From Takakia lepidozioides (lineage: Eukaryota; Plantae; Bryophyta), in the NCBI GenBank assembly GCA_030704615.1, contig CM060732.1, positions 72,664,001 to 72,728,000 of the forward strand: a DNA stretch of 64,000 nucleotides. Direction: 5' to 3'. A program made the position numbers and the translations under genes. Positions 1 to 47,068 of the stretch are shown in pieces. How positions within the stretch are numbered: the first letter of the stretch is position 1; every line of letters starts with the position of its first letter. The notes beneath the pieces are model-generated. The model was not told the origin of the DNA and ran no database searches. It worked only from the letters and a program-made list of their open reading frames with translations.

Positions 1-102
1 ACAATTCAAACGAGATTAATTAAGGCATTCCAAACTCTGTTGAACTGAGTGCTTCGGAAGCAATCCTGTTCCTATACTTCTCGAAATCTTCCACATGTCT
101 GG

Positions 103-965
103 AAGGAAATGAAATGGCATTCTATAGCGTCCACATAAAGCTCAAAGAGCTTATGGGACAAGAGGAAGAAATGAAATGAAATGGTGCTTTATAACGTCCA
201 CGGAAAGCTCATAGAGCTTATGGGACAAAATGGAAGAAAACATGAGAGAGGAAACAAAACCAGAGCCAAAAATAAAGCTATTGTTCGACTGATTGTCTAA
301 GGGTGAAGGCCTTGTGCAGGTGAGCTGCCAAGCATTTCTGATCCTCATAGTGGACGACTTCAGTGAGACCGGGCACCCCGGAATAGAAAATTGAATATCC
401 CATGGATCTCATAGTAGAAAGGCTATGCAAACTGGACATAGGCGGTCCTCGGTTGCAGGTTTTCCCATCTGCCAGTCTCTATCCGTAGGTTGTGGGACAT
501 CTCAGGAAGGCCTTGGAATAGAGAATAGTATCTCCCCCAGATCTCATAGTAGGGATGGAATGAAAGAAATTTTCTTCAGTTTCAATCTTCCTTCTGTCAT
601 TTTTTGAAGCAGGGCACAAGCCATCAGCACACTCCAGGTTGTCCCAGCTACCAATCTCTATCCGCAGACTGTGTGAGACCTTCCTAATGCTTAGGAGGGA
701 TGGGGCTATAGTTGCAATTGGGCTGTAAGATTCTATGATCATGGAGGACAATAGGACAGCAGCTTTGTTTTAAGTTTCCAGGTCCGCCTAACATGAAGCT
801 CCTGCATAAGGAGTTTGTTGCGATTGTGTTGGATTCCAAGCCTTCGCATACTTTGTAGCAGTAGGGAAGCACAGACAGTCCTTTTCCCTCACAGTAGTTG
901 GAGACCCGAGAATAACATGTGGTCTTGAAACCAGCGTTCTCGAGTCTCATAGAGGTTGCCAGGGC
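103..965 (-). mobile_element. LINE-A 3' fragments (stacked, 5'-truncated), (TTTCA)n tails
   Basis: gaaatgaaatgg tails at about 106 and 167; degenerate SH.LRIE.G.W..L..C..C motif on the minus strand. Confidence 0.8.
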
Positions 966-1407
966 TCGGACTGCAATTCAGACAACATCAACGACGCCTG
1001 AAGACATGTGCAGCTGTCCGAGCTCCTCTAAGACAACCTAGCTAGAGTATATGCATTTCTGATTGAGTACCAATCAATGTGCATCTAGTATGTACACATC
1101 TGCTAAACCACACCACTGCTGGTTTGTAAACTTAACGGTTACCCTTGATTAGAGACTGGGTCTCAGCATAACAGGGCTCAGGAAGGCTTCAATTGATGTC
1201 TCTGCAAGTTTCGGCTGCCTATCCAATAGTCATTATGGATATATAACTTGTTCAACGCACTACTCTATTTCCACCCATAGGAAATAGTAAGAGAAGATCG
1301 TTATAAAGAGAAGATCTTTCCAGACAACACAGTCTTTGCCATTTGGGTCAAGGCCCAGCAACCAGCAGAAGTGAGCAAATGAGTTGCCGCTGGAAAGTGC
1401 CACCCAC

Positions 1408-1735
1408 CTTCAAGAGTTGGACGGGAACTGATTGTGGGGGTCTAATTTGTCTACTGGCCTGGAGCTGCCAAGGGGACCTGAAGGCCTGGATCTGCCGTTT
1501 GTCAATTGCTGCAACTGCATCTTCCAGAAATACATTTTGTTGGTTACGAAGGTTCTCCAGGATAGCTGTGATGTACATGCCTTGGTCACGGGGTTCCACC
1601 AGGCACATAGCCAGTGGACAGTTCCCATTCATAGATGGAATGGGCTGCTTGAACTCGTGGCACTCGTACCCTCTCACATTGCCCCGCAATAGGTTCCATG
1701 ACTCTGCAAAGTCGTCGAAGAGTGTCTGCAGCTCC
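1408..1735 (-). CDS. RNF213-like exon 19 (C-terminal region)
   Basis: [11 protein letters not shown]...PLAMCL....G.YI.AIL..L...QN.FL; donor AAG|GTGGGT. Confidence 0.8.
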
Positions 1736-3848
1736 CTTCAGGCATCCACCACTCAACAGCAAATAAATAAGTAGCTGCATGTATCATGGCATTTGAACTT
1801 TCTCTACCCAATCTCACAACAAAGCTCCACTTCTATCGAGAGACATTCTTGGTGCTCGGCGACAATAGAATCTTGAGACCAAATTACCTTTCAGCATCCT
1901 TATCTCCTTCCCTCCTGAGGGCATTGGGGCGGTTCAGGGTGGGTTCCCACAACCTACGGATAGAGACTGGCAGATGGGAAAACCTGCAACGGGAGGACCG
2001 CCTATGTCCAGCTTGCATAGGGTGCAGCCAGGAAATCGAAACTGGAGAACACTTCTTCTACTGCCCTCTATACTACGAGATCCGTGGGAGATTCCACTGT
2101 TTATTCAGTGGAACCCAAACTCTCACTGATGTCTTCCACTATGAGGATAAAAAATGCTTGGCAGCCTACCTGCACGAGGCCTTCACCCTTCGACATTCGC
2201 TAGAACATTAATTGTGGTTTCTGGAATTGTTCCTCTCTCATGTTTCCATTTTGTCCCATAAGCTATGAGCTTTCCGCGGACGTTATAAAGTACCATTTCA
2301 TTTCATTTCTACAGTAAAGAACTCTCTTCTGGCTGCACCATGTGCATACCCCTACAAAGATATTATGTCCACTGGAGGGCCATAGAACCACTGTTCGAAA
2401 TGAGATGAAATGAAATGGTACTTCATAACGTCCGTGGGAAGCTCAAAGTACTCATGCCCAACAATTTACAATCTCATTGCAGAGAACTGGGTGGATGGAA
2501 GAACTGGTACCATGCGAGAAAACACTGTTGATTCAGCTAACAACAGATCATCATCCTCATGGGTATAAAGGAAGAATTCCATAGATAACTGTAGAGGCTA
2601 GATTTGTCGATTGTGAGAGCACTTACTTGTTTCCTCTCAAAAACTCTTCTATGGTTGTTGATGCTGCTGCTGCACGTGTGATTTTGTAGCAGAGTTTTCC
2701 ACTAACAGTGTTACAGAAACGAACAAGGGGCATCAGGTGCTGTATGTTATTCAGGATCTCTTTGTGCTGGAAGAACACTTCTATGATGGGGCTGGCCTCA
2801 ATCCTTTGAGGGTCCTGCATGTACAAAGCCTTAAAGTTTTCAAGAGATGGGCTGATTGTAATACGCAGAAGAGCTCCCATTGCAGTGGGAAATGGTGACA
2901 CCACCCTCTCTTTCAAGGAATCTGCTAGCAAATTGATTCCCTGTTGCTGCTTCAAATATGTGGCTGAAGTTTGATGGACATTTTCAAATGTATGAAGCAT
3001 ATTCTGAAATCCCTTCTCCCAGCTGTCCCTTGCTACAGCGGTGACTAGGGCACCAGTGTGGGGAATAGTAGTCAGTGACGCTACAATACTGTGAATATAA
3101 TGGCATGTAACCTCATGGCTGCAGGAGAGGAGATCGTCCAGTTTGCTCAAATCTTCCTCAATTACTTTCTGTAGCTCATCGGTGATGCAGGAAGCATCCA
3201 CAGGAAGCCCCATTACTTTAGCCAGGTTGCCAGCTCTTTGCCCCATATTAACACCAATCAACAGACAGTAGTGCACTATCAGGCGGAGAGCTCGGTAGCA
3301 TCTCAATTCAAGATGGCGGACTGAATATAAGACATCTGATCGGGCAATGTTGTCAATTATGAAACCTGCACAATGTTCTCCAGGATGAATATCAGTACTC
3401 AGAAAAAAATTCTCGTCTTCAGTCCATGTCATTGTTTCTGATGTCTGATGGATGTTTCTTTCTCGCCTATCCAGGTTGCACAGGGCGCAACCAGGAAATT
3501 GAAACTGAAGAACACTTCTCTATTGCCCTCTATACTATGAGATCCGTGGGAGATTCCACTGTCTATTCCGTGGAACCCAATCTCTCACTGAAGTCTTTCA
3601 CTATGAAGATCAGAAATGCTTGGCAGCTTACCTGCACGAGGCACTCACCCTTAGACAATCACTCGAACAATAGTTTTTATCTCTGGCTCGGGGGGGGGGG
3701 GGGTTGTTTCCTCTCTCATGTTTTCTTCCATTTTGTCCCATAAGCTCTATGAGCTTGCCGCGGACGTTATAAAGCACCATTTCATTTCATTTCTTTGAGT
3801 TATAAAGTACCATTTCATTTCATTTCATTTCCCTTCGGAGACATCTGA

Positions 3849-3880
<32 letters not shown>

Positions 3881-6800
3881 GGCCCCTACGCAAGGATGAC
3901 ACGCACAAATCGAGAAATGGACCAAATTGTTTTAGACATCACATCCAAACAGGATCGCAACCGATTAGAAGGGAGCTTATGGAACTACATGTCAGGAGAA
4001 CTTGGAAGCTACCCAATCTCACGACAAAGCTCCATTTCTATCTAGAGACATTCTTGGTTCTCCGGGATGATAGAATCTTGAGGCCCAATTACCTTTCGGC
4101 ATCTTTATCTCCTTCCCTCCTGAGAGCATTGGGCCGGTTCAGGGTGGGCTCCCACAACCTATGGATAGAGACTGGCAGATGGGAAAGCCTGCAACGGGAG
4201 GACCGCCTATGTCCAGCTTGCACAGGGCGCAACAGGGAAATTGAAACTGAAGAACACTTCTTCTATTGCCCTCTATACTACGAGATCCCTGGGAGATTCT
4301 CACTGAAGTCTTCCACTATGAGGATCAGAAATGCTTGGCAGCTTACATGCACGAGGCCTTCACCCTTAGACAATCACTCGAGCAATAGTTATTATTCTTG
4401 GCTCTGGTTTTGTTTCCTCTCTCGTGTTTTCTTCCATTTTATCCCTCTATGAGCTTTCTGCGGACGTTATAAAGCACCATTTCATCTCATTTCTGTTTCT
4501 TGTTTGCCTTTTGTCCAATAAGCTCTTCGAACTTTCTGCGGACGCAGTCATCTTTCCTCCAAGCAATGCTTGGAGCTAGCGGCACAACTCCATCACACAT
4601 TCTATGTGCAGAGATTGCATGCATGCCACATCAAACCAAGGCCAGCTTCCGGCTTACAATCTTTTTTAAGAGGATACAAGCCCTAAAACCCAAAGGGCAC
4701 ACAGCAGGAGCCCTCACAACATCTATCAAGCTCAGATCAGCAGGTTTCAAGCCCTCCTGGTATAATTGGGTGGGCAGCTTTTGGAGCGCAATAGACTCTC
4801 TGTTGCTTCCCTATTGCCACAAAATACAGAAAGGGTGGAAATCACGTGTAAACAGGATCGCAACCGACTCATTAGAAGAGAACTTATGGAACTTCATGTC
4901 AGGAGCATGGAAGCCAGCCACTCCTACAACAAAACTCCATTTATATCAGGAGACATTCTTAGTTCTCCTTGACAATAGAATCTTGCGGCCTAATTACCTA
5001 TCTGCAACATTATCTCCCTCTCTTCTGAGGGCATTGGGGCAGGTGGGCTCCTACAATTTACGGATAGATTGTACTCATAAGACGTTGTTTGCCGTAGCCT
5101 TGTGGCCATTGACCCCGCGCCCAGTTTGAGCGGGAACAAAAGGACCCTACAATTTACGGATAGAGACTGGTAGGTGGGAAAACCTGCAATGGCCAAACCA
5201 CCTATGCCCAGCATGCACCTGGCGAAACCGGGACATTGAAACTGAAGAATACTTCTTTTACTGCCCTCCCTACTATGAGATCCGTGGGAGATTCAACTGT
5301 CTATTCCGCGAACACCAATCTATCTCAGAAGTCTTCCATTATGAGGATCAGAAATGCTTGGTCACTTACCTGCATGAAGCTTTGACTTGTTTCCTTTTGT
5401 CCTGTAAGCTCTTTGAGGTTTTTGCGGACGTTGTAAAGTACCATTTCATTTCATTTTTTGCAAATCCCTTGAGCAGTAGTTGCTTTTGGGCTGTTTTTTG
5501 GCTCTGGTTTTGTTTCCTCTCTCTCCCTTAGACAATCACTCGAGCAATAGTTTTATTTTTGGCTCTGCCTTTGTTTCCTCTCTCATGTTTTCTTCCCATT
5601 TGTCCCATAAGCTCTATGAGCTTTTGGACGTTATAAAGTACCATTCATTTCATTTCTTTCATTTTTTCTGGGAAATGCTTGACAGTGTCTTTCACCAGGC
5701 ACTCCTCAAAGGGAAATGCAATGAAATGGTGCTTTATAACGTCCGTGGAAAGCTCATTAAGGGACAAAATGGAAGAAAACATGAGAAATGAAATGAAATG
5801 GTGCTTTATAATGTCCGCGGAAAGCTCGTAGAGCTTATGGGACAGAATGGAAGAAAACATGAGAGAGGAACAAATCCAGAAACCACAATTAATGTTCTAG
5901 CGATTGTCTAAGGGTGAAGGCCTCGTGTAGGTAGGCTGCCAAGCATTTTTGATCCTCATAGTGAAAGACATCAGTGAGAGTTTGGGTTCCACTGAATAAA
6001 CAGTGGAATCTCCCACGGATCTCGTAGTATAGAGGGCAGTAGAAGAAGAAGTGTTCTTCAGAGAGGGAAAAAGAAAAGAAATGAAATGGAACCTGATAAC
6101 GTCAGCGAAATAAAAAAGAAAAAGAAAGAAAGAGGCTCAAAGAGCTTATGGGACAGAAGAAAGTAGGATACCAAGAAATGAAAGGGTACTTTATAACGTC
6201 CGCGGAAAGCTCGAAAGTGGGTCCTAAAACAAGCAGCCCAAAAACTAGGATTCAACTTCGAGAGATCCTCTAAGAGAGAGTCTAATTTAGATATCCGGTT
6301 TAGGTCTCAAGCCTAGAGACTCGAACTTTCATGCCTTCATTGCGCTTTTTGGTTGCATCAGGTTATTCCATCTACCAGTCGCTGACGTGATCCCATCCTG
6401 AATCTTCCAAATGGCCATTAAAGAAATGCAGCATGGTGCAAACAAGAGAAATGAAATGAAATGGTACTTCATAACAAGAGAGAGAAGGGGTGAGGGCAGG
6501 GGTGATTACCCTTCTCGATGTAGGTAGCTGGTAACAAGGTGTTGCCACTGGCAAGCCCGTGATGTGTCCCACCAATAGGCCCTTTGCAGTCAGGACACTG
6601 TCCTGCTTGGGCGGGTAGGGTGCACTCTCCAATCACGTACACATGACCGCACTTGCATTTGTATTCACCAATCTTTCGACCTCGTGCAAGAGTATTCTTA
6701 AAAGCAGTCAGAGGGTTGTCAGGGGCCACCAGGACAAATGCTTCAAACAGGTGAGCTGCATCCAGGGCCATGTAACCCTACATGCATCAAGACAATGCAC

Positions 6801-9800: not shown

Positions 9801-12800
9801 GCAGTGAAGACATTAGTTTTGAGACCCACAGGTCTCTTGTGTCATTCTTTGACTGGTCGCTGGAAAATCAACCAAAACTCTTAGCAGGGGTCAATCAATA
9901 TTAGAGCAACAACAAATTTCACGGGAGGCTCACCATCCATACTCTTACCTCAGATCCATATCCTGCCGCTGTAGTTGGTCCAATGTGATCTGCCGCCATC
10001 CACTCAGAAAGGTGAACCCACATCTAATTTCGACCTCACGGTGAGTGTGGATAATGAGCATGACATGCTTCCTTAACTTCTCAGCATCATCAATCTGATC
10101 AAGGGACTCAGCTTCCACCTTTTCAACTAGAAACTTGGCGAGAGGTATGTGCTCTCTGTCCAACACAGCATCAGCTTGCAAAATTAACAGATTGGCAGCA
10201 CTTCCTGACCAAAATTGTTGAATCTGTGCTTCAAGCTGCCTTTCAGAAGAAAAGTCACCCAGCTTCCCTACTTGTACCTGCATACACAGAAACATCAGAT
10301 TAGACAAAAGAAGCTGACCAACTGACCTATGAAAGTTGCTAATTCATCAATCAACTCCTTGAGGTGAGGGATTTGGATTAAGGGTGGGTGATGCCACCAT
10401 ACCAGCCCTTATGTTTCCAGATGACTTCGCAGGCATAGGGGAGACTCCATCCAATCTTCAGGAGTTGATTGATTGCACGAAAAGATACTTTGAAGAGGGT
10501 AGAAGAGATTCTCAAGGATTTGAATCTAAGTCCGCAAGTCTGGACCTGCTGGATAAATGCGACTTAGAGGCTGTAATGTCCATAGCCATGTCTGTTGCCA
10601 GGAAATTGTCTGATGAAATGAAATGGTGCTTTATAACGTCCACGGAAAGCTCGTAGAGCTTATGGAACAAAATGGAAGAAAACATGAGAAAGGAAACAAA
10701 ACCAGAGCCAAAGATAAAAAACTATTGCTCGAGTGATTGTCTAAGGGTGAAGGCCTCATGCAGGTAAGCTGCCAAGCATTTCTGATCCTCATAGTGGAAG
10801 ACTGAAAATGAAAACGAACATGAAGTTAGGCAGAAAACTTCCCTGAACTTGTTTCCAGTCTGTGACATGGGGGAGGCCATCATGGATGACCTCAAGGTAT
10901 TACCCACTCTCGGCACTAGACTGAAATTTAAACTGAGGGCAACAAGCCTACCTTCAACAGCAAATAGAAGCAAGAGGAAAGGGGGATTGCAAATGCCCGT
11001 TGTGTTCCAATTCATTTCATTTGTCATCCATATTCAAAAGCTGCATCGCACATAATTGACAAAAGGGCAGCAGGAACTTGCACTTACATGAAAATCGTGA
11101 ATGTCATTTAGTATGAACTTGATAGGTGCATGGATATTGCAGCGTGTCGTCACAACCACCTTGAAGCCCAGCCCCTTAGACCAGATTTCATTTTTTCCCA
11201 ACTGCAAAAGGTTATCACAACTAGTTACAACATCAGATGCTGCTATTGACGAGTAGCCGACTTAGTGCCTTCTTCAAAGATGGTGGCATGCTGAAACCTC
11301 CACAACCCACTTAAGAGTCTAGTAATCATTCTACCAAACAAGAGGAGGAAAATAAGAGGCAAATTAGTCACCTAGAGGTACAAAGGCATGCTTGCACTGA
11401 AAGTTCCAAATGAGAATATCAAACAGACTTGAACCAATTAACAGGAGATTGACAGCACTTCCATTTGAGTTCCATAAAATCACAAGACCTATTTTATGCT
11501 TGAAAGGTCATATGTTCCACTTCTCCTGGTGGTGGATTGGAGGAGGCGACACATCATGTAGCAATCTTGAAGGATCAGGCTGTGGAGCATCAGTAAAAAT
11601 GAAACAGTACATAGCTGCAACACTCACATCAGAGGAGATCGGCTCTACTACACTCCGAAGGATTTTTTCTCTCTCACAATAGACTCATGTCATCTAATAC
11701 TCCTCTCTTGGTCCTCAACTCAGGTCTTTTTCTTCTCTTTGAGTTTTGCACGGATGTACCAATTCGGGTCATGGTAGGAGGAGTACATTGGCAAGAAGAA
11801 AGTCTGGAAGACATTGCTGGTCTTTCCACTGGCTGAAAAACAGCTCAGTCCATCTTCCCAAATCTGCTACCTCCCTCTGGCAATTTTTGGATTCATAAGC
11901 TCGCACCATGCCATCCGCATATGCTGTGCGCACTAGATCCTCCTTGCACCTTTTCCAACAGGAGAAATTCAGAGAGCTCTCGTTAGGAATTCTGCACATA
12001 CTAAAACAATTATGAGACATACCTGGTGACAAAAAATGCTCCAGGGGGAGCACTGTACTTCTGCCTATGTGTTAACTCCTCCAGATTTCAAATTTCAAAT
12101 TGCAGTGACTTGTCAATGAAATAGCAAGTTAGTGACAAGTCAGTAAGAAGTCTTTGCATAGTGTTCAAAGACATAACTCACAATGGTGAGAAATGAAATG
12201 AAATGAAATGGTACTTTATAATGTCCGCGGAAAGCTCAAAGAGAGGATTTTGTTCATGTCATTGGAAAACAACTTCTCCAAAGAGACCTAAAAGAAAATG
12301 CAAGATACATGGAAAGTAATCAATCTCTTTTGCCTTCATTTTTGTTGGTGCATGCAGCACCAAGTAAATAAACAAGCCAGTCCTGTACCTATTTCAGACC
12401 TCCATGGCCTACCATACCTATAGCAGACATATAGGTTATGCTCATCTTCAGGTCAACATTGGTAGATTGAGGAGGGAAGCCACTGGGTGCAAACTATACC
12501 TGTCAAGAAGCACTGTGAGGTCTGATGCAGTGTTCATCTCCTCATCTTTTGGGAAGTGGAAGAGTAGAAGAGAAGGCAGCGTGTCCTCATGGAAACCAGC
12601 AAACAGGTCACTCTCCTGAAATGGTGGATGTTGGCCGCCACTATCAAGAGAAGAGATGCTTGCCATCTTCCCAACCCATGACTTCAAAGTATTAACAGCC
12701 TGAATCTGCAGCTCTGTAAGCATGCTCTCATAAGTCAAAACTTGTTTCTCGAATCTGTTGACAAAGGGGGGGTCCAGATGGGGTATTTGGCTGAAGTCCA

Positions 12801-15800
12801 CAACAACAATGCACCGGAAGTTGTCATGGACATAGCACATTGGGTTGCTATATGATCCAATAGCAATGCGACAGTTTCGGCGGCCGCCCACCACTGTGTA
12901 GTGCTGGTTCAACATGTCATACAGAGATGACCAGAGTCGCTCCACTCCCTTCAGTAATATGCACCTTTTAAGACAGTACACTTTATCATGAATATGTTTT
13001 TATTGAAGACTGCTTGCAAAGGGAAATGACAGAAAATTTGAAAATTCCCTAAATAATTGGCATTGCTGAGCTTCTCTAAATTTGTACAAGACTTATCACC
13101 TCCTGTCTGTCAAAACAGTTTGTTATCCCTACACAGAAGAGTAGATTTTCATGAGGAAGTAATGAGACTGCAGATAGAGTAAGAAAAGCAGGTGCTGCAT
13201 ATAAAAGCTTTTGAGGCTCTCCCTAACCTGAATGCACTAGCCCGTGGAATCCCTTTGTTAGGACTTCAGAGGTCTGTAGTTACCTATGTCAGTAGTGAAC
13301 TTAGCATATAAATGTTGGCATTAGAACTTCGACCTGCAAAGTCAAAACCTTGATGCCTGATCAACTTCCAAAACCAGCCAATCAATCAGATCAAAAACTT
13401 GTACATAACTTACCGGCCCGCCTCCATGTGAAGAATGATGTTGCTGAGCATCACATAAGCATAGTCGTCATCGCCACAGTCATCCTTGTACTTGCTGCCA
13501 TGAATAACAACAATATTCTCTTGGAATCCAAGAATATTCTCCAAGATTCCAATTGCAGAATGTCCCTGGAGTAAGTCCAAATGCAACCCAGGACAAACAA
13601 GTTGATTAGCAGTGCTGAGCTAGAGTACCAATGCTCAACCTGACGAATTTGATTTTGTTGGCTGGAAAGAAGATTGCCTCCGAAGTTATTGCATCTCAGT
13701 AAAATCTAACACTGAACTCTCCATCAGAGAGGGAAAGCAAAACATTGCCATTTCACAGGCTAACTCGAAGCTCATTTTGTAATTCCTTTCTCCAACGCAA
13801 AGGTGTAGAGTCTTAGTTGCAACATTGCACAACTTAGTTCTCCTTTGGACAGAGATAGCTACGTAACATTTAGCTTTTCAACACACACACAAGTTCAATT
13901 TTTATTGAATGACAATAAATAACCTGTTGCTTCCACCCGGGTCTAAGGACGTTCTTTGAAAAATTAACTACCTGAAGTCATATCGTGGAAGAAACTCGCT
14001 TTTGACACATGGTATTCACAAGGCAACGGTGAACTGGTGGCCTCAACTTGTCCTCACTAACCACTCTCCATGGTTATGTATAGTTCCAGCTATATCTTTT
14101 TACTTAACCATAGTATTGGTGAGAAATTTAAGAGAGCAAACTTACAGTTGTTATGAGCATCAAATGCCGCGCATCTTTGTCATGCAGGTTTGCTCTAACC
14201 AAATCCAATATTGGTGGTGGCCTTTGGAGTAACAACTTCTCACCCAGATTCTCCTTCAGAATCCGAGAGTATGTACCTACATCATCCGGAGAACCTCCAA
14301 AGTTCCGCCAGACAGCTGTTACCAGCTCATGCAGCTGCCAACGCAATGTACTTTTGATCCCACAGAGGGACCTGATAAGAGAATAGAAATCCCGAAGACC
14401 ATGGAAATTAGCCTGCGACTGACATGCCTGATAGGTGTGGTAAGCCCTCGCTAAGGCTTTGAGTTCCTGTCTCAAAATTGTGTGGAAGCCACCTCCTGTA
14501 ATTCCATAGCTTTCTAGTATTGCAAGACTGGTCATGTAAAGGTCATCTTCAGAGGGATCTGGCTGCGAGAGATGGATTGCACGGTTCATTTTTGCAGCAT
14601 CAAGCGACCAGTTGCTTATCCCCACCACTGCCACCTGCTGTGGATCCTCTGGCTCCAACAGTGCATGCAGAACCTGTGTTGAGTTTTGAGCATGTATTGT
14701 TAGTTACTTTCTCAGAGAAACGAAATGAAATGAAATGAAATGAAATGGTGCTTATAACGTCCGCGGAAAGCTCGTAGAGCTTATGGGACAAAATGGAAGA
14801 AAACATGAGAGAGGAACAAATCCAGAAACCACAATTAATGTTCTAGCGATTGTCTAAGGGTGAAGGCCTCTTGTAGGTAGGCTGCCAAGCATTTTTGATC
14901 CTCATAGTGAAAGACATCAGTGAAAGTTTGGGTTCCACTGAATAAACAGTGGAATCTACCACGGATCTCGTAGTATAGAGGGCAGTAGAAGAAGAAGTGT
15001 TCTTCAGTTTCAATTTCCTTGCTGCGCCCTATGCAAGCTGGACATAGGCGGTCCTCCCGTTGCAGGTTTTCCATCTGCCAGTCTCTATCCGTAGGTTGTG
15101 GGAACCCACCCTGAACCGCCCCAATGCCCTCAAGAGGGAAGGAGATAAGGGTGCTGAATAAGGGTGTACGAAGAAACAAATGAAATGGTACTTTATAATG
15201 TCTGCAGAGAGCTCAAAGACCTTATGGGACAAGAGGAAGCAAGAAACAAGAAAAAGAGAGGGGCCACAAGCAGCCCAAAATGAAATGGAATGGAACTTTA
15301 TAACGTCCGCAGAAAGCTCAAAGAGCTCATGGGAAAAAAGAAAAACAAGAAAGAAGAATGAGACAAAACCACGCAAGAGAGAGCCAAAAGGAGCCCAAAG
15401 GCAACTACTGTTCAAGGGATTGCCTAAGGGACAAGGCCTCAAGCAGATAAGCTGCCAAGGATTTCTGATCCTCATAATGGAAGACTTCTGTGAGTTCAAT
15501 TTCCTGGTGGGCTCCAAAAAAGCATCCCTAAAACTAAATTGGACTTCCCAAAGAAGACAAAAAGGAACACTTAAGAAAACGTTGAACAATTCCTGAAGAC
15601 AGAGCACTGTGCAAGTAGGCTGCTTTGTATCCTCACAACTGAGCCTCTGCAAAAGACTGGGATTATGTGAAGAGACAATAAATAGTCAGATTCTAACCTT
15701 TGCGGATGTTTTACTGCAACATCCCCCCTTAATCTGAAGGATATGAGAACCCATTCTTAATGTGCCAAAGGCCTTGAGCACCCCAGAGAGGTGCAAAGGC

Positions 15801-18800
15801 ATGAAAAGAACTGAAATCAAATGGTACTTCATAACGTCCGCAAAAGCTCAAAGAGCTTATGGGACAAAATGGGAAAAAACAAGAGAGAGGAAACAAAACC
15901 AGAGCCAAAAAAAGCCCCAAAGCAACTACTGCTGAAGGGATTGTCTAAGGGTCAGGCCTAGTGCAGGTAAGCTACCAAGCATTTCTGATCCTCATAGTGG
16001 AAGACTTCAGTGAGAGATTGAGTTCCGCGGAATAGACAGTGGAGTCTCCCACAGATCTTATAATAGAGAGGGCAAAAAAAAAAGAAGTGTTCTTCAGTTT
16101 CAATTTCCTGGTTGCGCCCGGTGCAAGCTGGGCATAGGCGGTCCTCCTGTTGCAGGTTTTCCCATCTGCCAGTCTCTATCCGTAGATTGTGGGAGCCCAC
16201 CCTGAACCGCCCCAATGCCCTCAGGAGGGAAGGAAAGGCGCCGCAAGGTAATTGGGCCGCAAGATTCTATCATCACGGAGAATCAAGAGTGTCTCTCGAT
16301 AGAAATGGAGTTTTGTTGTGAGAAAGAGACTTAGAAGATCTGGGAAAGTTCAAAGAGCTTATGGGGTGCTTGTGGGACAAAAGAAAGCAGGACACAAGAA
16401 AGAGAGTAGGGCCCTAAACAAGCAGCCCAAAAACAACTATCCATCAAGGGAGTCTATAAGATGAAACACCTCATGCAGATATGCTGCAAAGCAGCTCTTT
16501 CTACTCGTGTCCCTTGGCCCTTTCCCTCCCTTCCACTACGAGGAATGAAAGGATACTTTCTAAAAACAAAAAATAAACTTTACAACGTCAAAGGGAAGCT
16601 GAAAGAGCTGTCAGGACGAAGGAAAACAGAAGCATCAAACAAAGCCGTGGGGACCACAACAAACAGCCGCCACAAACAGAAACCACAACTCAACTTCAAG
16701 AGATTCACTAAGCATCTCTGATCCTTGTAATGGAACACATCTATCAGGGAGGGCCTTCTCTAAAATGGTAAACAGAGTGGCCCCAGATTTGATATTAGAG
16801 AGGATAGTGAAACAAGAAATGTTCTTCAGTCTCAATCTCCATCTGTGCAGGACAAAGGTGTTCCGCATGCTGCAGCTTATCCCATCTGCCAGTCTCCATC
16901 CTAAGGGAGGGGCTATCTCTAAAATGGAAAACATGGTGGCCCCAGATTTCATATTAGAGAGGATAGAGAAAGAAGAAATGCTGTTCAGTCTCAATCTCCA
17001 GCCTGTGCAGGACAAGGTGCGGCATGCTTCAGATTATCCCATCTGCCAGTCTCCATCCTCAGGCTATCTGAGCCCACCCTGACTCGTCCATATGTCCAAG
17101 AGAAGAGAGGGAGAGACAGAGGTGCAAACAAGTAATTGGGCTGTAAGAATTTATGCTCGCAAAGGATGAGGAAGGTATCCCTACATAACTGTAAAGGGAA
17201 GGGAAGCGACTTCAAATTCTTCTGCAGGGAAGCCACTACACTTCAGGTCCTCCTAAATGCTTCTACTATGCTGGAGAAATGCTACAAGACACGGGTGACA
17301 GTCTCTGTAATGCTTTCAAAGAGCTACACACAAGTAGCACTTCCTATCTCTGGAAGTGATGCAGACATTATTGGCAGTCCCTCAGACTATGTACCTTGAG
17401 AGGGTTATGGCTTGATATTTCAGCAAGGCCAACTTCATCAAGTACCACCACCACCAACACGTCCCGATCACGGTTGTCATATACACAGCGATTGGCTTTT
17501 TCAAACACCTGCAATAACATAACCCAAAGCAATTTCCCATTTGAAAAACTACACATCCCACTCCCTAGAGAAACGGCATAACATCCACGGGGCCACAAGG
17601 GCCAATAGATGGCAAAAAAATATGAAACCAAAAATGAAATGGAAATGACCTGAAATGGTACTTTATAACATCTGCGAGAAGCTCAAGGAGCTCATGGGGC
17701 AAGAAGAAGGATGCATTCTCTTAAATTTGAAGTGTGGGGGTCATGCGAACCCAGGATTGAACCCAGGATCTGACTGGCGCACAAATGAAATGAAGTGGTA
17801 CTTCATAATGTCCGCCGGAAGCACAAAGAAATGAAGTGAAGTGAAATGAAATGAAATGGAATGGAACTTTATAACGTCCGCAGAAAGCTCAAAGAGCTTA
17901 TGGGACACAAGGAAAACAAAGAAACAAGAAAGAGAAATGTAGATAAGCTGCCAAGCATTTCTGATCCCGTATGGAACACTTCTGTGAGGTTGGGTTTTGC
18001 AGGACAGACGGTTGAACCTCCACGGATCTCATAGTAAAGGGGCAGGAAAAGAAGAAGTGTTTCAGTATCGATACACCGGGTGGGCCCGGTGCATGCTGGG
18101 CATATTGGGTCTTCTTGCTGCAGGTTTTCCCACCTACCAGTCTCTATCCGTAAATTTCTCTCCCTGTCCTCTAGGAAGCCTATTGACATTGGGTGGACTT
18201 GAAACGGGAGTACATTAATGTCTCTGACTAAATGCCGGCCTTGTGACCTCGTGTTCTTGTTTGTTTCGACCTGAAGCGCTTTGCTTCAGGTAAGGTAGTG
18301 CATTGGATTTAGTTGGAAAGCTTGGGGCCTTTCCCTCTTTAGAATATGCCTACACGGGCCATTCCCTGCAACTCCCTGGAGTGTGATCTCTGAATGGTAA
18401 CAAGCGGACTCCTACCGCTTGGGGGCAGCCCCTCCGCCCAAATTGGGGAGTCGTATGCTCTGTCTAGCATACTCGGCACTTGGGCTCGGGTTGGTTCCTG
18501 TGCTTAAACTTATGGCCTGCGAAAACAATCAAAAATTTAGCTCCTATCAACATCAACACTCCTCAGGGTGATCCCTGGGAATTGGTTGCTTATGCCAAAT
18601 CTAGGGCTTCATGTGTAGTTTTTGGGGTGAATCCCAGGATGGACGATGTGTCCTTTAAAACTACATGCTCTAGCTTAGGCTTGGATTTCATGGCTAATGG
18701 TACCATCTCGAGACTTGATAACAGGGGTACGTTGAAGGTTGCAATGACCAAAAGTGCTTCTAATAGAGTCCCGCATTAATTCAATCTCAAAGAAGTTCAT

Positions 18801-21800
18801 CCCTTGACTGGCTGGAGAGTGGTCTTAGACATTGGTGATTCAATGGGGCGCTCTAGGAAGACAACCAAGGGCAACGACTTCAACTTGAGAGTTTCTAATC
18901 GGTTTGATGCTCTGGATGAGGTTGAATCCAAACAGCCAGAAGGACAAGATGCCCCTAAGTGTACGGAACCTGAACGTCCTGAATCTGAAGGATTTGGTAC
19001 TCTGAATGGTTTACCAATCCCAGGTTTACACAAGACAAACAAATTCTATACACGGGGTAATTGTCCCCAAGCCGTCAGATGGCAATCTGTCCCTAAGGAA
19101 CGTCGTGTAACTGAAGGATTTGGTACTCTAAATGGTTTACCAATCCTCAAAGTCTACACAAGACGAGCAAAATCTATACACGGGGTAATTGTCCCCAAGC
19201 AGTCTGACGGACAATCTGCCCCTATGTGTGCGGAGCCTGTGCGTCGTGTAACTGAAAGATTTGGTATCCTGAATGATTTACCACTTCTCAAAGTTTACAC
19301 AAGACGAGCAAAATCTACACATGGGGTAACTGTCCCCCTTTGCAGAACGGTTGGCCGTCCAGGAGCAATCACAAGCTACCTAGACGACAAACAATTCACA
19401 CGCAAAGGGCTGGCTTGCGGCTGGCCACTTTCAACTTCTCAGGGTTGACCAACCAAAGGAAACAACTTGAAGTGGGACAAGTTCTTCGGACTAATGATAT
19501 TCATATCTGTGCTGGGCAAGAAACATGGGAAACGTCGGATAAACTGGTTGGAGATGTCATTGGTTATAAATGGGCAGGTAAGATGTGTACTCTCAAGGCA
19601 GCCTCTGCCAAACGCGGTCAAAAAGGGGTCGGATTCTTTGTCCGTGATTTCTTGTTTGACAATTGTGAAATTATCAACAAGGGTTTGAGGTACGAGCATA
19701 GTATCTGGCTAAAACTGAATTTGAAGGGCGGCATGAGTACAAAGGACCTCTTTGTTGGTTGTGTTTACATGCCCACAGAGGGGACCCTTAGTGCTGACGC
19801 AGACAAGGCCTTCGAAGATGTAAAGCTGGACTGTGCTTCGTTCCTTGCCAAAGGTCAGGTGGTACTATTGGGGGACTTCAATGCCCGGGTGGGCAAAGGG
19901 ATCCATCAGGACGATATCATTGGACCTTTTGGTGAGGACGAGCTGAATTCTAATGGCAGACGGTTAATTAACTGTCTAGAAGAGCTTCAGCTTTTGACCT
20001 TGAATAACAGGACAAGAGGTGACCAAGTGCAGTGGACTCGTGAGAAATCCCAAACTGGGGAACGTTCCATTGTGGACTATATCATAATGGACAAAATTTT
20101 GTTCCCCCAGTGTGCCAATGTGTTGATCGACAGAACTGATATTGGTACCTCTGACCACTTCCTGGTTTGGACTGAGATCAAAAGGTGTTTTCCCACCACC
20201 AAGAGATCTGTGAAACGTTCGATTCGGAAGTGGCGCATAGAAAAATTCCACAATGAGGAGGTCAAGGCTGAGTACGTCCAGGCCTTGCAAGAGGCTCTCC
20301 CTCATTTTGTCCAATCGCTCCAAGAACTTCAGTCACGCTCTGTTAACGCAAGAAATGAAGTCGAAAGAGCAGTGGACTCTTGGGAGAGTTTCGTTTCCTC
20401 CGTGGCTGACAAGATCATTGGGAGGAAACTAATTGTCTGCGGTAGAGCAGTTAATTGGTGGACTAATGAGATTAAACTCAAGATAGCTGAGAGACGAGCC
20501 CTCTATAAAGAGTGCTGCAATTTGGAAACCAACAGCGAATTGTGGGCGAGGTACTACCAGCTCCGTAAAGATATCAATCAGCTTGTTAGGTCTCAGAAGA
20601 AATTATACTGGGACAAGTTATACAGTGAAATAAACTCAAACCACCATGGTGGTAATGACAAGAAATTCTGGTTGGCCCTTCAACGTTTGTACAAGCCGAA
20701 AAACGGTCAGCAAGTACAAGCGCTGAAGACTACTAAAGGTGCAGTGGTGACTTCATCGGTTGACATTGTCAAAACCTTTGAAACTCACTACAGTATCCTT
20801 GGCAGAACTTCTAGGTCTAACAGTGAGGGGTCTTCTGCTGAATGGAGGGACACAGTTGGAAAAACTGTTCCTATGATTCAAAACAGCCCTGATGAACTGG
20901 AGTATATTTCAATGGCTTATAATGCTCCCATTAGTTCTTCTGAGATTGTGGAAGCAATTGAACATTTAAATGGATATAAAGCTGGTGGACCTGATGGTAT
21001 TGTCAACGAGCTTATCAAGCATGGTGGCGATCCCATGATAGAGGCCCTAGTTCTCCTCTTTAACCTTATCTGGAAGACTGAAATGATCCCCTTTCGCTGG
21101 CGACAGGGGGTCATTGTCAATCTATACAAGAAGGGTGACAGAGAAGAACCGGGGAACTACCGTGGCATCACGCTCCTCAATGCTGTTGGCAAGACATTCT
21201 GCAGAGTTATAAGTACTCGTCTCGAGGTTGATCTGGAGTCTAGAGGTTGTTTCCACGAAGGCCAAGCTGGCTTTCGGCGAAACAGGGGCTGTGTGGATCA
21301 TATCTTCACTCTAAGCCAGATTATCCAGGGAAGGAAAAAAGAATGGAAACCCACTTATGTCTTTTTCCTGGATGTCAAAAAGGCTTATGACACAGTGTGG
21401 AGAGATGGCCTATGGTTCCGCCTCTGGTCTTGTGGGATCAAGGGAAAGATGTGGAGAGTTGTCCACAACTTGTATGCTCACACCAAAAGCTGTGTCACTG
21501 TTAAAAGACAGAAGTCCAACTTCTTTGACATAGACCAAGGTGTAGCTCAAGGATGTATTCTCTCCCCTCTGCTCTTCAATGTTTTCATCAATCAACTCCT
21601 CGAGGATGTGAGTGAGGGATTTGGGTTAAGGGTGGGTGATACCACCATACCAGCCCTTATGTTTGCGGATGACTTCGCAGGCATAGGGGAGACTCCAACC
21701 AATCTCCAGGAGTTGATTGATTGCGCGAAGAGATACTTTGATCTTTGGGGGCTAGAGGCTAATGTCAGCAAATGTGCAGTGGTAGCATTCAACGACAGAG

Positions 21801-24800
21801 GAGAGGGAGGAAGTGATCTTAAGTGGCAGTGGGGTAGCCAAGAGATCCCGGTCCTCCCTTCCTACACTTACCTGGGCGTTGAGTTTTCCTCCAATTGTAA
21901 TTGGGATGCACATATCCGGAAAGTTGTTCAAACTGGCAAGGGCAAAGCTCTGGGGCTCACTAAATTTTTCCACTGCAGAGGGGTCAACTCTGAGGTTAAG
22001 AAAACCATGCTTTGTCGCGTTATTAGACCTGCCTTGGAGTACGGATCTGCTATATGTGTTTTTAAGTCCAACCAGGCTAAGTCTCTAGAATCCATTCAAG
22101 TGGGGGTGCTTAAGGAGTGTATGTCAGCATGCTCCAAAACAGCCAATGTGGCTGTTCGGGGTGAGTTTGGCATTCCGTCCTTAAGCTCCCGACGAGATGA
22201 ATTCAAGGTCAGATGGTGGGGTCAGCTGCAACATATGCCCAACACCAGATATCCTAAGTTAAACGACTCTATATCTTGGAAACAGGACCGCCCTGTCAAA
22301 GAGGCTAAGTCCTGGCAGAAGAGAGTAGAAGAGATCCTCAAGGACCTGGACCTGGATCCGCAAGTCTTGACCCTGCTGGATAAATCTGATTTAGAGGCTG
22401 TAGTGTCCTCAGCCATTTCTGTTGCCATGAGATTGTCTGATGAAAATGAAGTTAGGCAGAAAACTTCCCTGAACTTGTTTCCAGTCTGTGACATGGGGGA
22501 GGACATCTTGGATGACCTCAAGGGTCTACCCACTCTCGGCACTAGACTGAAATTTAAACTCAGGGAGGAAGCCTACCTTTGAACAGCAAACAGAAGCAGA
22601 GAGGAAAGGGAGAGTGCAATTGCCCATTGTGTGGGCAATCTGAAGACAGTATTCATTTTCTGATACACTGTCCGGGGTTCTCTCACCAAAGAGACGCTCT
22701 CTTCAAATCTATTAAGGGTATTGTGCCTGTACCCCTGTTTACCAACTTTGAAAGTCTCGAGGCTGAGCCAAAAGCCCAGGCCCTCCTGAGGCCTATTTTT
22801 TGGGCAAATCACACACAGCAGATTGATGTTTGTGTGAAGGGATTTCTAGAGGATATCTGGAAAACCCGGATTAATTCTATATATGGAGGTAAGTCTTACT
22901 ACCAACGTCAGCCCCTGACAGAGGTAGGTTCTGTCCCTTTTGTTCCCGCTCAAACTGGGCGCGGGGTCAATGGCCACAAGGCTACGGCAAACAACGTCTT
23001 ATGAGTACAATCTATCCATAAATTGTGGGAGCCCACCCTGAACCTCCCCAAAGCCCTCAGAAGAGAGGGAGATAAAGGTGCAGATAGGTTATTAGGCCGC
23101 AAGATTCTATTATCACAGAGAACTAAGAATGTCTGTCGATAGAAATGGAGTTTTGTTGTAAGAGTGGCTGACTACCATGTTCGCCTAACATGAAGTTCCA
23201 TAAGTTCTCTTCTGATGAGTCTGTTGCGATCCTGTTTGGTCGTGATTTCCACACCTTCCGTATTTTGTGCCCATAGGGAAGCAACAGAGTTCATTGTGCT
23301 CTTAAAAAAAAAAAGAGATGAAATGAAATGGTGCTTTATAACGTCCGCGGAAAGCTCATAGAGCTTATCGGACAAAATGGAAAGAAAAACATGAGAGAAA
23401 ACAGGAAACCAGAGTCAGAGATAAGAACTATTGTGCGAGTGAAAAGAAACAAAGAATTATATATTGTCCAAGAGAGTCTCCAGAGGCCCTGGGACAGTGT
23501 AGAACAAACCAAGAACTACTCCAGGGTACATCAGTTGTTGCCCTAAGCAGTTAAGCCACGAGGGACTTCACATTTCCAAAGTTGAAAGTATCCGCTAAGG
23601 ATTGGGAATCTCTAATAAGCTAGTAATATCTCCTGCGGATCTCTTAGTATGAGTTACAGGAGAAGAAATAGTGGTGCTCTGTTTCCACTTCCTGCGACGT
23701 GCAGACCAGACAGACTGATATACCAATCTTAAGCTGAAAGTTTGAGATCGCAAGTCTACCTACCACATACTAGTTCCTGTTTGTAAAATCCATAAACTGT
23801 GGACCTGTCGTATATATTACCTTGAGAATGCCTTCTGAAGTGGAACTCTCAGAGCCCTGATAAGAGAGCATGTACATCCTTGGTAATTGTTGGAAATAGG
23901 AATCCCTTGATTCCGAGCCTCTCAAATTGCTGCACAATGATAACTGAATCAGCATAAGCCCAAAAATCTAGAGTCTGAACCTCCAATTACTTTCAAGTTA
24001 TTGAACAAGATGGCATTAACCTGTAAATGAGCTGAAGCGCAAGGGTCTTGCCAGATCCAGGCTTCCCGACCACAAATACAGGGATGTAATTCAACATACA
24101 GACAAGCGTAACAAATATGTTCTCCAGCAGTGCTTTGTTCTTGGCTATTCCTGCTGGGATCTCCATGCGGTTCAGCAGGTCCATCTGTTCTCTTCTCAGC
24201 ATCTCACCATACATACGTCCATCGAAGTTCCTGTGACTTGATGCAAAAGACAAGCTTGTTACATAATAGCAGTATCTTACATCTGACAAAAAATACTGGA
24301 GTCTGTGATTTATGGTATTCCACAAAATTTTGCAAGAGCTTCAAGAATTGACTGGAGCAGTCACATCACAGCTCACAGGGGGAAAACTGTGAGTGAAAGA
24401 CCTGGAAATCAGGACATGTACTTTTACTTGGGCTGGAAATTCAAACATTATCAACTAGAAAGACCTCATTCCCAACACATGTACAAAAGAGGGTCTAGTG
24501 ACATCATGTTCCATCTTACCCGTTCTTGATGGGTTTTTCAGCAGTGATGACAGCAGCAAAGGTGTTCCGATACCGTTGTCTCTCTTCCTCAGATGCCAGA
24601 CGAGAATGGTAGCAGTGAGAAAAGGCCAAGACGGCTGCCCTCCTGGTTTTCTGGCCTTGGGAAACCTTTGACTTCTTCTCACCTAGCAGGGGCCTCTTTT
24701 CTATGTCGGCAAGAAACCATCGATACAACAAGATGCAGCGACTTACATCTCGCAAGCTGACACTCGCCTCCCCTTGACATTGCCTCACAAACAATTGAGA

Positions 24801-27800
24801 CTGCACCAGCAACTCAGTAAAGGCTACAAAATGAAGAGCAGTGTCGCTTTCTTGCAACATTGCATGGATGTATGCACGCTCATCAGTGGGATTTAGCAAG
24901 CCAAAATCCCATACATAATCCAGCATCGCCTCTGGAAGCGGGTGAACTCTGTAAGCCAGGTTGAAGTGTCGGGCTTCACTGGAACTCCCAGACTCCCGTG
25001 GTGTGAAACCAGATCGCAGACTCTCTGTGTCATGCAACCTATATGGGTTGCAAGCAGCTAGAACAACCAAACGCTCGTCAAGGAGCCTCCCATCTAAAAG
25101 GCGGTGGCAAATAATTGCATCAAGGAGTCCAAGATGGTCACATGCATTTATTTCATCAAGGAAAGCCCAGACCTGGAACACACACGGTATCAGTGGGCCT
25201 TTCTGTGTGTAAGAAATGAAATGAAATGAAATGAAATGGTACTTTATAGCAAATGAAATGAAATGGTGCTTTATGACGTCCGCGGAAAGCTCATAGAGCT
25301 CATAGCAAAGAGAGCAAAAAACAAAAGCAAGCAAGAAACAAGGGAAAAAGAGCGGACCAAAGCCAAGTCTTTTATATCAAGAGATTCTCTATGTTGGAGA
25401 AGTTATACCACCAGGCATCACTGGTCCTCATAAAGAAAATTTGTCAGGTAGTACAAAGGGGCTGGAGGCTGACCTTCAGTGGTCCTGTAGAAGCTTCAAC
25501 CTCTGCCTCTGCTATGAAAGACCGTATGCTGTCCTCAGTTGATCCAGCATGAAGAGTGACGCTGCGAAATGTCACACTGGAATAGAATGCCAACAATTTG
25601 AGGAGGCTTGTTTTCCCACACCCTGTTTCACCCATAATTATCACAGGAACAGTTGCCCGTACCCTGAGAGATATAAGTGCCATTTTCAAAAAGTTGTCTG
25701 CTGCGAGCACATATTGGGGCTTATAATACGGTGGACGACTCTGTAATATAGGCCACAAATTCTCCCACAACTCGTGGGATGTCATACTTGAGTAGTCTTT
25801 GAGATTTTCATTTCTCTCTGATTTCAACTTTTGGCTTTTAAGAAGCTGTTGAATGGAACAGGGAACAAGCTCCACATGTTTGTAGAGGACTGCAATGGGT
25901 CCATCTACCTGAAAGAATATCATTACATGGTTGCTATCTGACCACCGCAGCATTCCATTCATGCGACCAGTCATGGTCAAGTTTGTGTTTGTCCCGAGAG
26001 CTGGTTGCTGCTGGTCATGGAGCCAAGGCTTAACAGACCTTAATGAGAGATCACGAGCCACTTCCAATAGCGAATCGACCAGACTCGATCGAACTGTTGG
26101 CAGGGCACCCATCCATTGAAGGTTCTCCGGGGTGAAAAAGACACTTTCATTGAAGTTCCGTAACTGTAAGGAAAGAAACTTGATGAACATCTCCAAGATT
26201 GCAAACGACATGGAGTTCCCCTGCATATGTTGGATGAAATGTCTGTCCAAGAGGTCTTGACATCGGCCTGCAGACAGTGTGCCTATGTTTCTTTCATCAC
26301 CCTTGAAGATCAGACATTTCGCATCCAGCTGCCTTTCCTCCATAGCCTGCAAGTAGTGGCAGACAACTTGCACATCACTCTCTGGTTCCTCGCTCACTTG
26401 AAGGGACCCCAGATCCCAGCTTAAGTTCTCCCGTTGGAACCACTGGCAAACTCGGAGGCTCAAAGCCAGTTCATTCCCCAGTGTGTTAGCAAGCTCAATG
26501 GATACATTGGGAGTGTTCAAGAGGAAAACTCCGGCAAGATCTGACTTTAGGCAACCAAGCACCAGGAGTTCAAACAGAAGCACATTCAGAGTCTGTGGAT
26601 TCTGCACTGTGGAGATGTCAAGGTGTAAGAGAGTATTGGGGCACAATTTCAACTGCTTCAGTCGGCGAATGAGAGTGTGCTTGGAAATATTGCCACTAAC
26701 ACAGATTGATTGAACATTATCCTGCAAGCCAATTTAAGTTCAGATTGTCAGTATAGACTCTCCTAGACTTCCAAAACCTCATGAAGTACTGAGCTGGATT
26801 GCTCCACTGGCGGTGGGAATCCAAAGGCTGGAGAAAATGCAATTGAACTCTGTACTTTAGTCCTTTCCCTGCCAATGCCATCTTCCTTAGAGATGATCAA
26901 CTCAGGGCAGTATCAACACGTTGTATTGCTCTTATAATTTTAGCCCACCCACTGTGAGACAAAATGGAATGCGCATGTTGACAGTGCAAGACAACCATGA
27001 TGCTAAGAAAAAGGGAGGCATGTACGTACAGCAGAAGCAGTACAGATTTTCACTGTCTTTCCTAAGCCAGGAAGCTCTGAGGTGACCACCCGCATGTTGG
27101 TACACTCAACAGGTAGCTGCTGGCGAAGCTGATTAAGGTTTGTCGACCCCATATGGCAAACACGCACGTCCATATGCTGGGAAAGTTCATACAAAGGTTG
27201 ACCTGTGGAGCAGCACACTAAAGCCAACATCAATGGCTCACCATCCAGAGAGAAGTTCCCCTCTCTGTTGCTGTTTCTCTCTCCAGCTATCTCCACTTTT
27301 CTTTCTATGACCATCTCTTGAATAGTAGTTAGAAACTGGGCCTGACAATCAAAGCTCAGCTTCTCAATGTAGGCAATGCAGAATAGGGCATTTTTTTCTT
27401 GGGATTTCTCCCTGAAACAGCGCAGTAACAGCAGGTGAAGCTCCTCCCAAGCAGTTGTGAGGCTGCAGAGAAGCACATTTCTTTTGAAATCACGAAGACC
27501 ATGACCCTGCTTGTGAAACAGAGCTACCACAACATCGAGCTCTTGTTGCTGGTCTTCAACCAATGCTAATAGAATGGCCCCAGATCCTCTCCCAGCATTG
27601 TGCCCAAACCAACTGGCTTCATCAATTCCCAGCCCATTGACAACTGCTGGTGCAGCACTCTCCTTCACAAAAATACCATCCAGTGAGACCGCAATTGTCT
27701 TCAAGCAAGCTGAGAGGTCAGCTTCCCTGTCCTCCAAGTGCTTCCCAACAAGCATACGGTCCACGAGAGCTGGTAGCTGCAGCTGCTTTGCAATCTCTTG

Positions 27801-46621: not shown

Positions 46622-47068
46622 GAGATCTTTGTGGGCTGTGTTTACATGCCCACAGAGGGGACCCTTAGTTGCTGCAGTTGCTATCTTTAGTTGACCATCT
46701 ACGTCTGCTACTCTCCAGGTAACCTAACATGCATTCACCTCGAGCTACCTTCAACATAAAAATTTAGGGACGACTCTGAAAATAGGGAAAAACAGAGTGA
46801 AACGTGTTGATGAAGATACCTTCTATCAATTGTGCTCCTGCCGCTGCTGTTTCCAGTTGACCATCTACCCACGCAGATTTCTTATAGCTATTGATCCACA
46901 GGGAATCAGAAGTAATCTTGTGTTGAAATCCGGCCCTCTTGGATGGACCTGGACCTGTGACATCTAACCTCCTACGAACACCTGTTTTACTACAGGACCC
47001 ACCCCCGAAAGGGGGCAGTAGGGCCATAAGGTGAAGTGGCTCTTAGTACTTACACCGGCCTCGGCCGG

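Follow-up and report, generated by a model that had tools for sequence, protein, structure and literature searches.

Does one long interspersed nuclear element (LINE) direct itself to a fixed position inside another? The question is raised by a 64-kb stretch of the Takakia lepidozioides genome (contig CM060732.1, positions 72,664,001 to 72,728,000 of the forward strand), here called the window, in which two copies of an element that we call LINE-B interrupt copies of a second element, LINE-A. A preliminary description of the window had suggested that LINE-B is a LINE that targets another LINE. Our results make it rather probable that LINE-B is an apurinic/apyrimidinic endonuclease (APE)-type, poly(A)-less non-LTR (long terminal repeat) retrotransposon with a single open reading frame (ORF), which targets one particular sequence that the members of a single LINE-A subfamily carry in their 3′ coding region. 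The counts of sites and junctions given here refer to this one window, in which the number of LINE-B/LINE-A junctions is two.

Two LINE-B insertions at one nucleotide of LINE-A

The two insertions and the host copies that they interrupt are as follows.

18143..18156, + strand: 5′ target-site duplication of the full-length LINE-B (TCTATCCGTAAATT), 14 bp, identical to 23011-23024 at 13 of 14 positions
18157..23010, + strand: LINE-B, full-length defective copy of 4,854 bp, single-ORF type, with N-terminal domain, APE, reverse transcriptase (RT), CCHC and conserved C-terminal tail
23011..23024, + strand: 3′ target-site duplication of the full-length LINE-B (TCTATCCATAAATT), 14 bp
17830..18142, − strand: 3′ part of host LINE-A copy A2, with a (CATTT)n-type tail
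23025..23305, − strand: 5′ part of host LINE-A copy A2, 5′-truncated, abutting the tail of another LINE-A
5050..5068, − strand: 19-bp target-site duplication, the copy adjoining the LINE-B 3′ end
5069..5145, − strand: 5′-truncated LINE-B, 75 bp matching 22936-23010 plus two ambiguous bases
5146..5164, − strand: 19-bp target-site duplication, the copy adjoining the 5′ end of the truncated LINE-B
4546..5459, + strand: host LINE-A copy A1, split by the truncated LINE-B and lying within the 3′ region of an older LINE-A

Both LINE-B copies join one 3′ end to TCTATCC(G/A)TAAATT, and both lie antisense to their host LINE-A, an orientation that had been noted before and that we found at each junction. 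The shared insertion nucleotide of the preliminary description is confirmed by an 18-mer straddling the boundary between the LINE-B end and its target, which occurs exactly twice in the 64 kb, at 23000-23017 (+) and at 5062-5079 (−), where 0.03 occurrences would be expected. On the LINE-A sense strand the shared first-strand breakpoint is GGATAGA^GACTGG. Read from the sequence, it falls within a Glu codon about 15 codons ahead of the C-x2-C of the zinc knuckle, in agreement with the position upstream of the LINE-A CCHC knuckle that had been given for the cut. The duplications reported earlier are present at both copies, but their lengths are 14 and 19 bp and thus not equal; the two have a common left end, which is the first-strand nick. 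The 19-bp duplications of the truncated copy match each other perfectly, and the single mismatch between the duplications of the full copy (18143-18156 and 23011-23024) is a CpG transition. The truncated copy had been given as 77 bp of LINE-B; positions 5069-5143 are identical to 22936-23010 at 75 of 75 bases, but the last two, 5144-5145, are ambiguous.

The two LINE-B insertions arose separately and share both the nucleotide and the strand. The 19-bp duplication holds five LINE-A bases (GTAGG in the orientation of LINE-B) that lie outside the 14-bp one, and for this reason no deletion or conversion could turn one insertion structure into the other. The LINE-B copies also have unlike 5′ ends: one is complete, and truncation has left the other only the part from about 22934 onward. 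The hosts differ as well: A1 and A2 share 87% identity in the 279 bp compared on the 5′ side and 77% in the 319 bp compared on the 3′ side, their 5′ truncation points are different (~4546 for A1, ~23305 for A2), and their outer flanks are unrelated. A common 5′ end of the two hosts was considered and rejected, A1 extending upstream as LINE-A to its truncation point and A2 stopping at its own. The unequal duplications, the LINE-B 5′ ends, the host truncation points and the host identity of 77-87% together bear out the earlier claim of independent insertion as opposed to duplication. Since two independent insertions hit one nucleotide and one strand, the nick is genuinely sequence-selective. An exact first nick and a variable second nick are the usual pattern of target-primed reverse transcription.

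The host element had been described as an abundant target, and LINE-A is indeed a multicopy LINE, with at least 16 3′ ends in the first 25 kb, many of them nested in one another's 3′ regions. The LINE-A sequences of the window are only 5′-truncated pieces of the 3′ region, at most about 0.9 kb long, with (CATTT)n-type tails, and no LINE-A reverse transcriptase was found in the 64 kb. A1 and A2 were therefore already dead, 5′-truncated copies when LINE-B arrived, and these two cases do not bear out the suggestion of the preliminary description that LINE-B inactivates LINE-A.

Specificity of the target site

Five copies of the LINE-A target site in the window are empty.

16169..16193, + strand: empty LINE-A target site (..CCAGTC / TCTATCCGTAGATT..)
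472..496, + strand: further empty LINE-A site
1946..1970, − strand: further empty LINE-A site
4151..4175, − strand: further empty LINE-A site
15078..15102, + strand: further empty LINE-A site

With the two occupied sites this makes seven canonical LINE-A sites, all of which carry the 12-nt core CAGTCTCTATCC. In the sense orientation of LINE-A, the nick of the occupied pair is preceded by AATTTA and followed by GGTAGGTGG, whereas the five empty sites have AACCTA or AATCTA before this point and GGCAGATGG after it; the two groups of sites differ in four bases, none of them more than 10 bp from the nick. Were insertion random among the seven sites, the probability that both events fell in the occupied-type pair would be 1/21. 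The comparison points to a LINE-B footprint of about 20 bp. The empty sites were probably already present when LINE-B inserted, small as the numbers are, because the LINE-B ends (75/75 identical) and the duplications (32/33 identical) are nearly undiverged, whereas three of the empty LINE-A copies are just 87-89% alike among themselves. A comparison of the full LINE-B with the target revealed no homologous or complementary segment beyond chance; an internal RNA guide is therefore unlikely, and guidance by protein is favored.

We propose that LINE-B would integrate at the LINE-A site by target-primed reverse transcription. The two insertions show that the LINE-A sense strand is cut at GGATAGA^GACTGG and that the cDNA is primed directly on the ..GAGUACAA 3′ end, with no tail. 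The nick in the second strand, made 14 or 19 bp away, is looser and gives rise to duplications of unequal length, and one of the two events reached full length while the other aborted after about 77 nt. The LINE-B APE, possibly together with other parts of the ORF, may read about 20 bp that include the four positions separating the subfamilies. The target would lie within a protein-constrained LINE-A motif, R-I-E-T-G-R, ahead of the zinc knuckle. Such a constraint would keep sites available, and LINE-B would have in LINE-A a multicopy harbor that is harmless to the host.

Structure and coding state of LINE-B

The full-length copy is made up of the following parts.

18480..18779, + strand: N-terminal domain segment of the LINE-B ORF, with an in-frame stop at 18777-18779
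18928..19337, + strand: three tandem copies of a 126-141-bp unit, forming a linker between the N-terminal domain and the APE
19340..22582, + strand: main open frame of 1,080 codons, with APE (~19424-20158) and RT (~21131-21883) assigned by Pfam
22561..22582, + strand: second frameshift, where homologues pass from the RT frame into the −1 frame (residue 1213 of the relative P0001 maps to 22561-22564 in both frames)
22579..23004, + strand: C-terminal frame, with a C-x2-C-x7-H-x4-C knuckle (~22621-22671) and a conserved tail homologous to that of relatives
22955..23010, + strand: 3′ terminal block, with DNA-level conservation in distant relatives (GCGxGGTCAATGGC..GCTAxGGCA..TGAGTA)

The identification of LINE-B as a LINE with APE and RT, already made in the preliminary description, is supported by Pfam matches of the main frame to RVT_1 (E 1.6e-33) and Exo_endo_phos (E 2.4e-6). 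Searches of Pfam, the ESM Atlas and solved structures returned generic APE and RT labels only; among the solved structures, the LINE-B RT matched L1 ORF2p (E 5e-36) and R2 (E 3e-28). The catalytic columns of the APE domain (N, E, Y, D, N, D, D, H) do not vary among 33 homologues, and LINE-B has all of them. The structural model of the endonuclease has a predicted local distance difference test (pLDDT) score of 91.7, and its top match among solved structures is the human L1 endonuclease (1vyb, E 1e-16), followed by the TRAS1 endonuclease. As modeled, the LINE-B endonuclease domain has an intact LINE-type APE fold and looks functional in design. The element also displays other traits of a LINE, namely an APE that is N-terminal to the RT, duplications of 14 and 19 bp, 5′ truncation, a fixed 3′ end and the lack of LTRs.

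Judged from its reading frames, the LINE-B copy in the window is dead. It carries at least three breaks, one in-frame stop and two frameshifts, where the preliminary description had counted a single frameshift. No ATG precedes the APE domain in the main frame, whose start is overlapped by a frame of 214 codons; the main frame was therefore once continuous with the upstream frame, with a frameshift somewhere in 19340-19448. The N-terminal segments lie in one shared frame that is split by the stop. By eye, the segment at 18480-18779 is like the N-terminus of the relatives P0001 and P0007 (W..V...K..A..V.GV......LGL..F..G), although no alignment by a tool was significant.

The LINE-B stop codon lies 6 nt ahead of the 3′ end of the element, which terminates in ..GAGTACAA and lacks the (ATT)n tail of its relatives. 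The last 50 nt or so are kept at the DNA level in the window (22960-23010) and in three other elements (L001, 8129-8172; L003, 7990-8035; L002, 4380-4420). This block spans C-terminal codons and the stop, and it is kept across elements of different organisms that are 37-43% identical in amino acids. It may be a recognition element for the RT, for which the evidence from RNA folding is weak: a 3′ hairpin was looked for, and a small conserved stem with one compensatory pair was obtained whose fold was no better than that of shuffled sequences (z 0.33).

Relatives of LINE-B

The nearest relatives of LINE-B (P0001-P0041) come from a TARA metagenome scaffold, from the ENA assemblies ERZ25072076 and ERZ25072258 and from Ectocarpus sp. 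They have 37-43% amino acid identity to LINE-B over 97-99% of the APE-RT frame, and the matches are labeled just "unnamed protein product" or "hypothetical protein". Intact relatives are single-ORF elements of 4.2-4.4 kb whose ORF of about 1,390 aa includes the N-terminal domain. They resemble LINE-B in architecture, in a C-terminal/3′ block that ends in TGAGTA, in a stop codon that is a few nucleotides from the end and in duplications of 13-16 bp. In contrast to LINE-B, which ends in ..GTACAA and was found twice at one site, they have (ATT)n-type tails and occupy unrelated, AT-rich, non-repeated targets. Three elements of one family in one assembly (L001, L004 and L005) have (ATT)n ends with flanks that differ in 3/3 cases, and the duplications that flank L001 (13 bp) and L003 (16 bp) lie at non-homologous AT-rich sites; homology between these two targets had been suspected by eye and was rejected. 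Insertion at the same site is therefore not a general habit of the lineage. An exact scan of JGI metagenome contigs for the final 21 nt of LINE-B gave 0 matches, and a protein search with the 141-aa C-terminal frame of LINE-B gave no match.

Comparison with known site-specific elements

In the literature consulted, target-specific APE-type LINEs are confined to two clades, Tx1 and R1, and the targets listed for them are rRNA and small nuclear RNA (snRNA) genes, telomeres, microsatellites and DNA transposons (PMC4640811). Tx1L of Xenopus laevis inserts into the piggyBac-derived Tx1D, and 90% of the copies of the crocodilian SINEU-3, which is mobilized by Tx1 elements, lie in Mariner-N4_AMi; for Tx1L/Tx2L and SINEU-3 the endonuclease is held to set the site (PMC4494074; PMC1950540; PMC6719617). 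LINE-B is like these in being an APE-type retroelement at a defined site inside another multicopy transposon. However, the targets of Tx1L and SINEU-3 are DNA transposons, whereas LINE-B has entered the 3′ coding part of another LINE. The teleost Tx1-clade LINEs Kibi and Koshi are specific for (TC)n and (TTC)n, respectively (PMC4494074). The LINE-B nick likewise lies in a TC-rich context, but the targets of Kibi and Koshi are microsatellites, whereas the LINE-B sites are unique sequences of 14-19 bp. The Tx1 clade has been described as animal (PMC4494074), whereas the host genome of LINE-B looks plant-type, to judge from its U6 copy at 3827-3931, which is probably close to plant U6.

The organization of the ORFs differs too. 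Tx1-clade elements have two ORFs, with a separate ORF1 ahead of an ORF2 that encodes APE, RT and CCHC. A separate ORF1 was not found in the LINE-B lineage, in which the relatives have their single ORF of about 1,390 aa and the N-terminal segments of LINE-B share one frame. LINE-B, with its single ORF and its RT motifs of the QAGFRxxRxC and NYRGITLL type, presumably stands apart from L1 and Tx1, and we take these motifs, together with the (ATT)n tails of the relatives, to be closer to RTE/RTEX-like elements than to L1/Tx1, as a lead only. The likeness to RTE/RTEX concerns relatives that end in (ATT)n, whereas LINE-B is without such a tail. Brown algae are reported to carry both RTE and RTEX elements (PMC4421812).

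In the R1 clade, the APE domains of R1Bm, TRAS1 and SART1 cut the first strand of a multicopy target with base precision (PMC1919474; PMC7265360). The LINE-B endonuclease model is like the R1 clade in matching the fold of the TRAS1 endonuclease, after that of human L1, but likeness of fold alone does not discriminate. At the level of sequence, the LINE-B endonuclease had no significant match to that of R1Bm or TRAS1. R1-clade elements have a gag-like ORF1. Their targets (R1Bm, TRAS1, SART1) are 28S rDNA or telomeric repeats, unlike that of LINE-B. A literature search, itself incomplete, found no report of a published LINE with its target site in the coding region of another LINE.

Alternative explanations

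Several observations weigh against dedicated targeting of LINE-A. The window yields two junctions only, and these were flagged because they coincide, which is a selection effect. Older LINE-B-like fragments at 10343-11005, 46626-46674 and 52470-52844 are all without the 3′ end and hence have no junction; those at 10343-11005 and 52470-52844 say nothing about targeting. The window is also rich in LINE-A: 8 of its 16 TCTATCC sites and 8 of its 9 TCTCTATCC sites lie in LINE-A, counting one in a diverged LINE-A-like copy (site at 657), and therefore a motif of 7-9 bp would look alike locally. The LINE-A site contains TCTCTA, the 1/21 contrast between subfamilies could reflect age or chromatin, and other LINE families in the genome have putative TCT(C/T) or (TC)n/TCTCTAGA targets. 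A simple alternate explanation would be that the LINE-B endonuclease favors a TC-rich motif of 5-9 nt (approximately TC^TCTATC), with entry into LINE-A as a by-product and with diverse flanks elsewhere in the genome. The local concentration of such motifs in LINE-A and the existence of relatives without site specificity are what this explanation would lead one to expect. We consider it unlikely, though a contender to be taken seriously, since both insertions lie in a minor LINE-A subfamily while five further sites with the core CAGTCTCTATCC are empty, an outcome with a chance of 1/21 to 1/36 for random core-bearing sites and of 1/780 for the 6-mer TCTCTA. Moreover, the repeat tail seen in the non-specific relatives is missing from LINE-B, whose 3′ junctions are base-precise.

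Base-precise junctions in both copies would equally follow if specificity were set by pairing between RNA and DNA. Read-through transcripts of LINE-B would carry the antisense LINE-A flank of the donor, and this flank would anneal to nicked LINE-A; read-through sequence is thought to set junctions in a similar way for rDNA elements. A stop codon only 6 nt from the LINE-B end, with no terminator or poly(A) signal noticed by eye (no scan was run), is compatible with read-through, and such guidance would readily account for a preference for the LINE-A subfamily that hosts the donor. Against this stand the need for a nick at the right place, the lack of direct evidence of read-through and the absence of homology to the target in LINE-B itself. 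Guidance by the flank appears improbable to us as an explanation in its own right, and it overlaps partly with the targeting that we favor. Less probable still is that the two junctions are not independent, or that they agree by chance: one ancestral chimera of LINE-A and LINE-B would have been copied by duplication, gene conversion or composite retrotransposition, or two random insertions would have coincided. A1 and A2 do have subfamily-specific bases in common around the site, and the case was selected out of thousands of windows. However, the duplications of 14 and 19 bp, the unlike LINE-B 5′ ends, the host truncation points and the outer flanks allow no derivation from a single event, and random agreement at one nucleotide and one strand has a probability of about 1e-4 per pair. 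The preliminary description had itself named descent of all composites from one ancestral chimera as a possibility, and the anatomy of the junctions largely refutes it.

Targeting of a defined LINE-A sequence by LINE-B thus remains the explanation that we prefer. A stronger version of it is possible but doubtful, namely that LINE-B is an APE LINE with a specificity of about 20 bp outside the Tx1 and R1 clades, from a lineage without known target-specific members, that is dedicated to the coding 3′ region of another LINE and tells LINE-A subfamilies apart by two to four bases. If this were true, LINE-B would truly parasitize another parasite, within a plant-type genome, and would represent a new enzyme from nature for sequence-specific RNA-to-DNA integration. 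Any LINE with its site in a protein-constrained motif of another LINE would extend the list of target classes, and endonuclease specificity may then have arisen independently a third time. The close non-specific relatives of LINE-B would allow comparisons that make it a simple system for asking how APE domains read DNA, and it would be another candidate for site-directed, RNA-templated insertion. The case bears on the formation of transposon nests in a LINE-rich genome; should the preference for a short motif prove right, it would be one of ordinary nesting.

Other features of the window

LINE-A 3′ ends lie at 100-6300, 14700-16350, 17630-17940, 23310-23420 and 25210-25340, and many of the fragments are just 45-75 bp long and arranged head-to-tail or nested. 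The start of A1 falls inside an older LINE-A copy, after ..CTGCGGACG, at 4545/4546. Apparently LINE-A copies insert into the 3′ end, or the (CATTT)n tail, of other LINE-A copies. The fragment of LINE-B at 10343-11005 has 84-91% identity to LINE-B, an internal deletion and, at 10613-10803, an antisense fragment of the LINE-A 3′ region; nesting therefore also runs from LINE-A into LINE-B. On both sides of this LINE-A fragment the LINE-B sequence overlaps by about 9 bp (22442-22450), which resembles a duplication. A candidate for a third LINE-B 3′ block, at 8146-8170, was rejected as unrelated coding sequence.

A full-length U6 snRNA copy lies at 3827-3931 (+) (Rfam, 100.5 bits), with a TTTT end 3 nt before a 5′-truncated LINE-A in sense orientation (3935-4507). 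This copy is probably close to plant U6 as in Arabidopsis, with CpG-type changes. The fusion (3827-4507) lies just downstream of another LINE-A tail, and its arrangement is the layout of U6-L1 chimeric retrocopies that arise from template switching. Such chimeric retrocopies are known in mammals (cited in PMC4494074).

Two putative genes are present in addition to the LINEs. A 201-codon ORF at 58432-59037 (+) contains a TPM (TLP18.3-type) domain (Pfam, E 1.3e-11). A word search of 5.8 billion proteins gave no relatives of this ORF at E <= 0.001, and a domain-bearing ORF without relatives suggests a poorly sampled lineage. At 24000-32112 (−), and probably reaching both ends of the window, there are very long open exons with Walker-A-like motifs, which would fit an RNF213/mysterin-like gene. 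The LINE nest at 0-24 kb would then sit in introns of this gene or between its exons.

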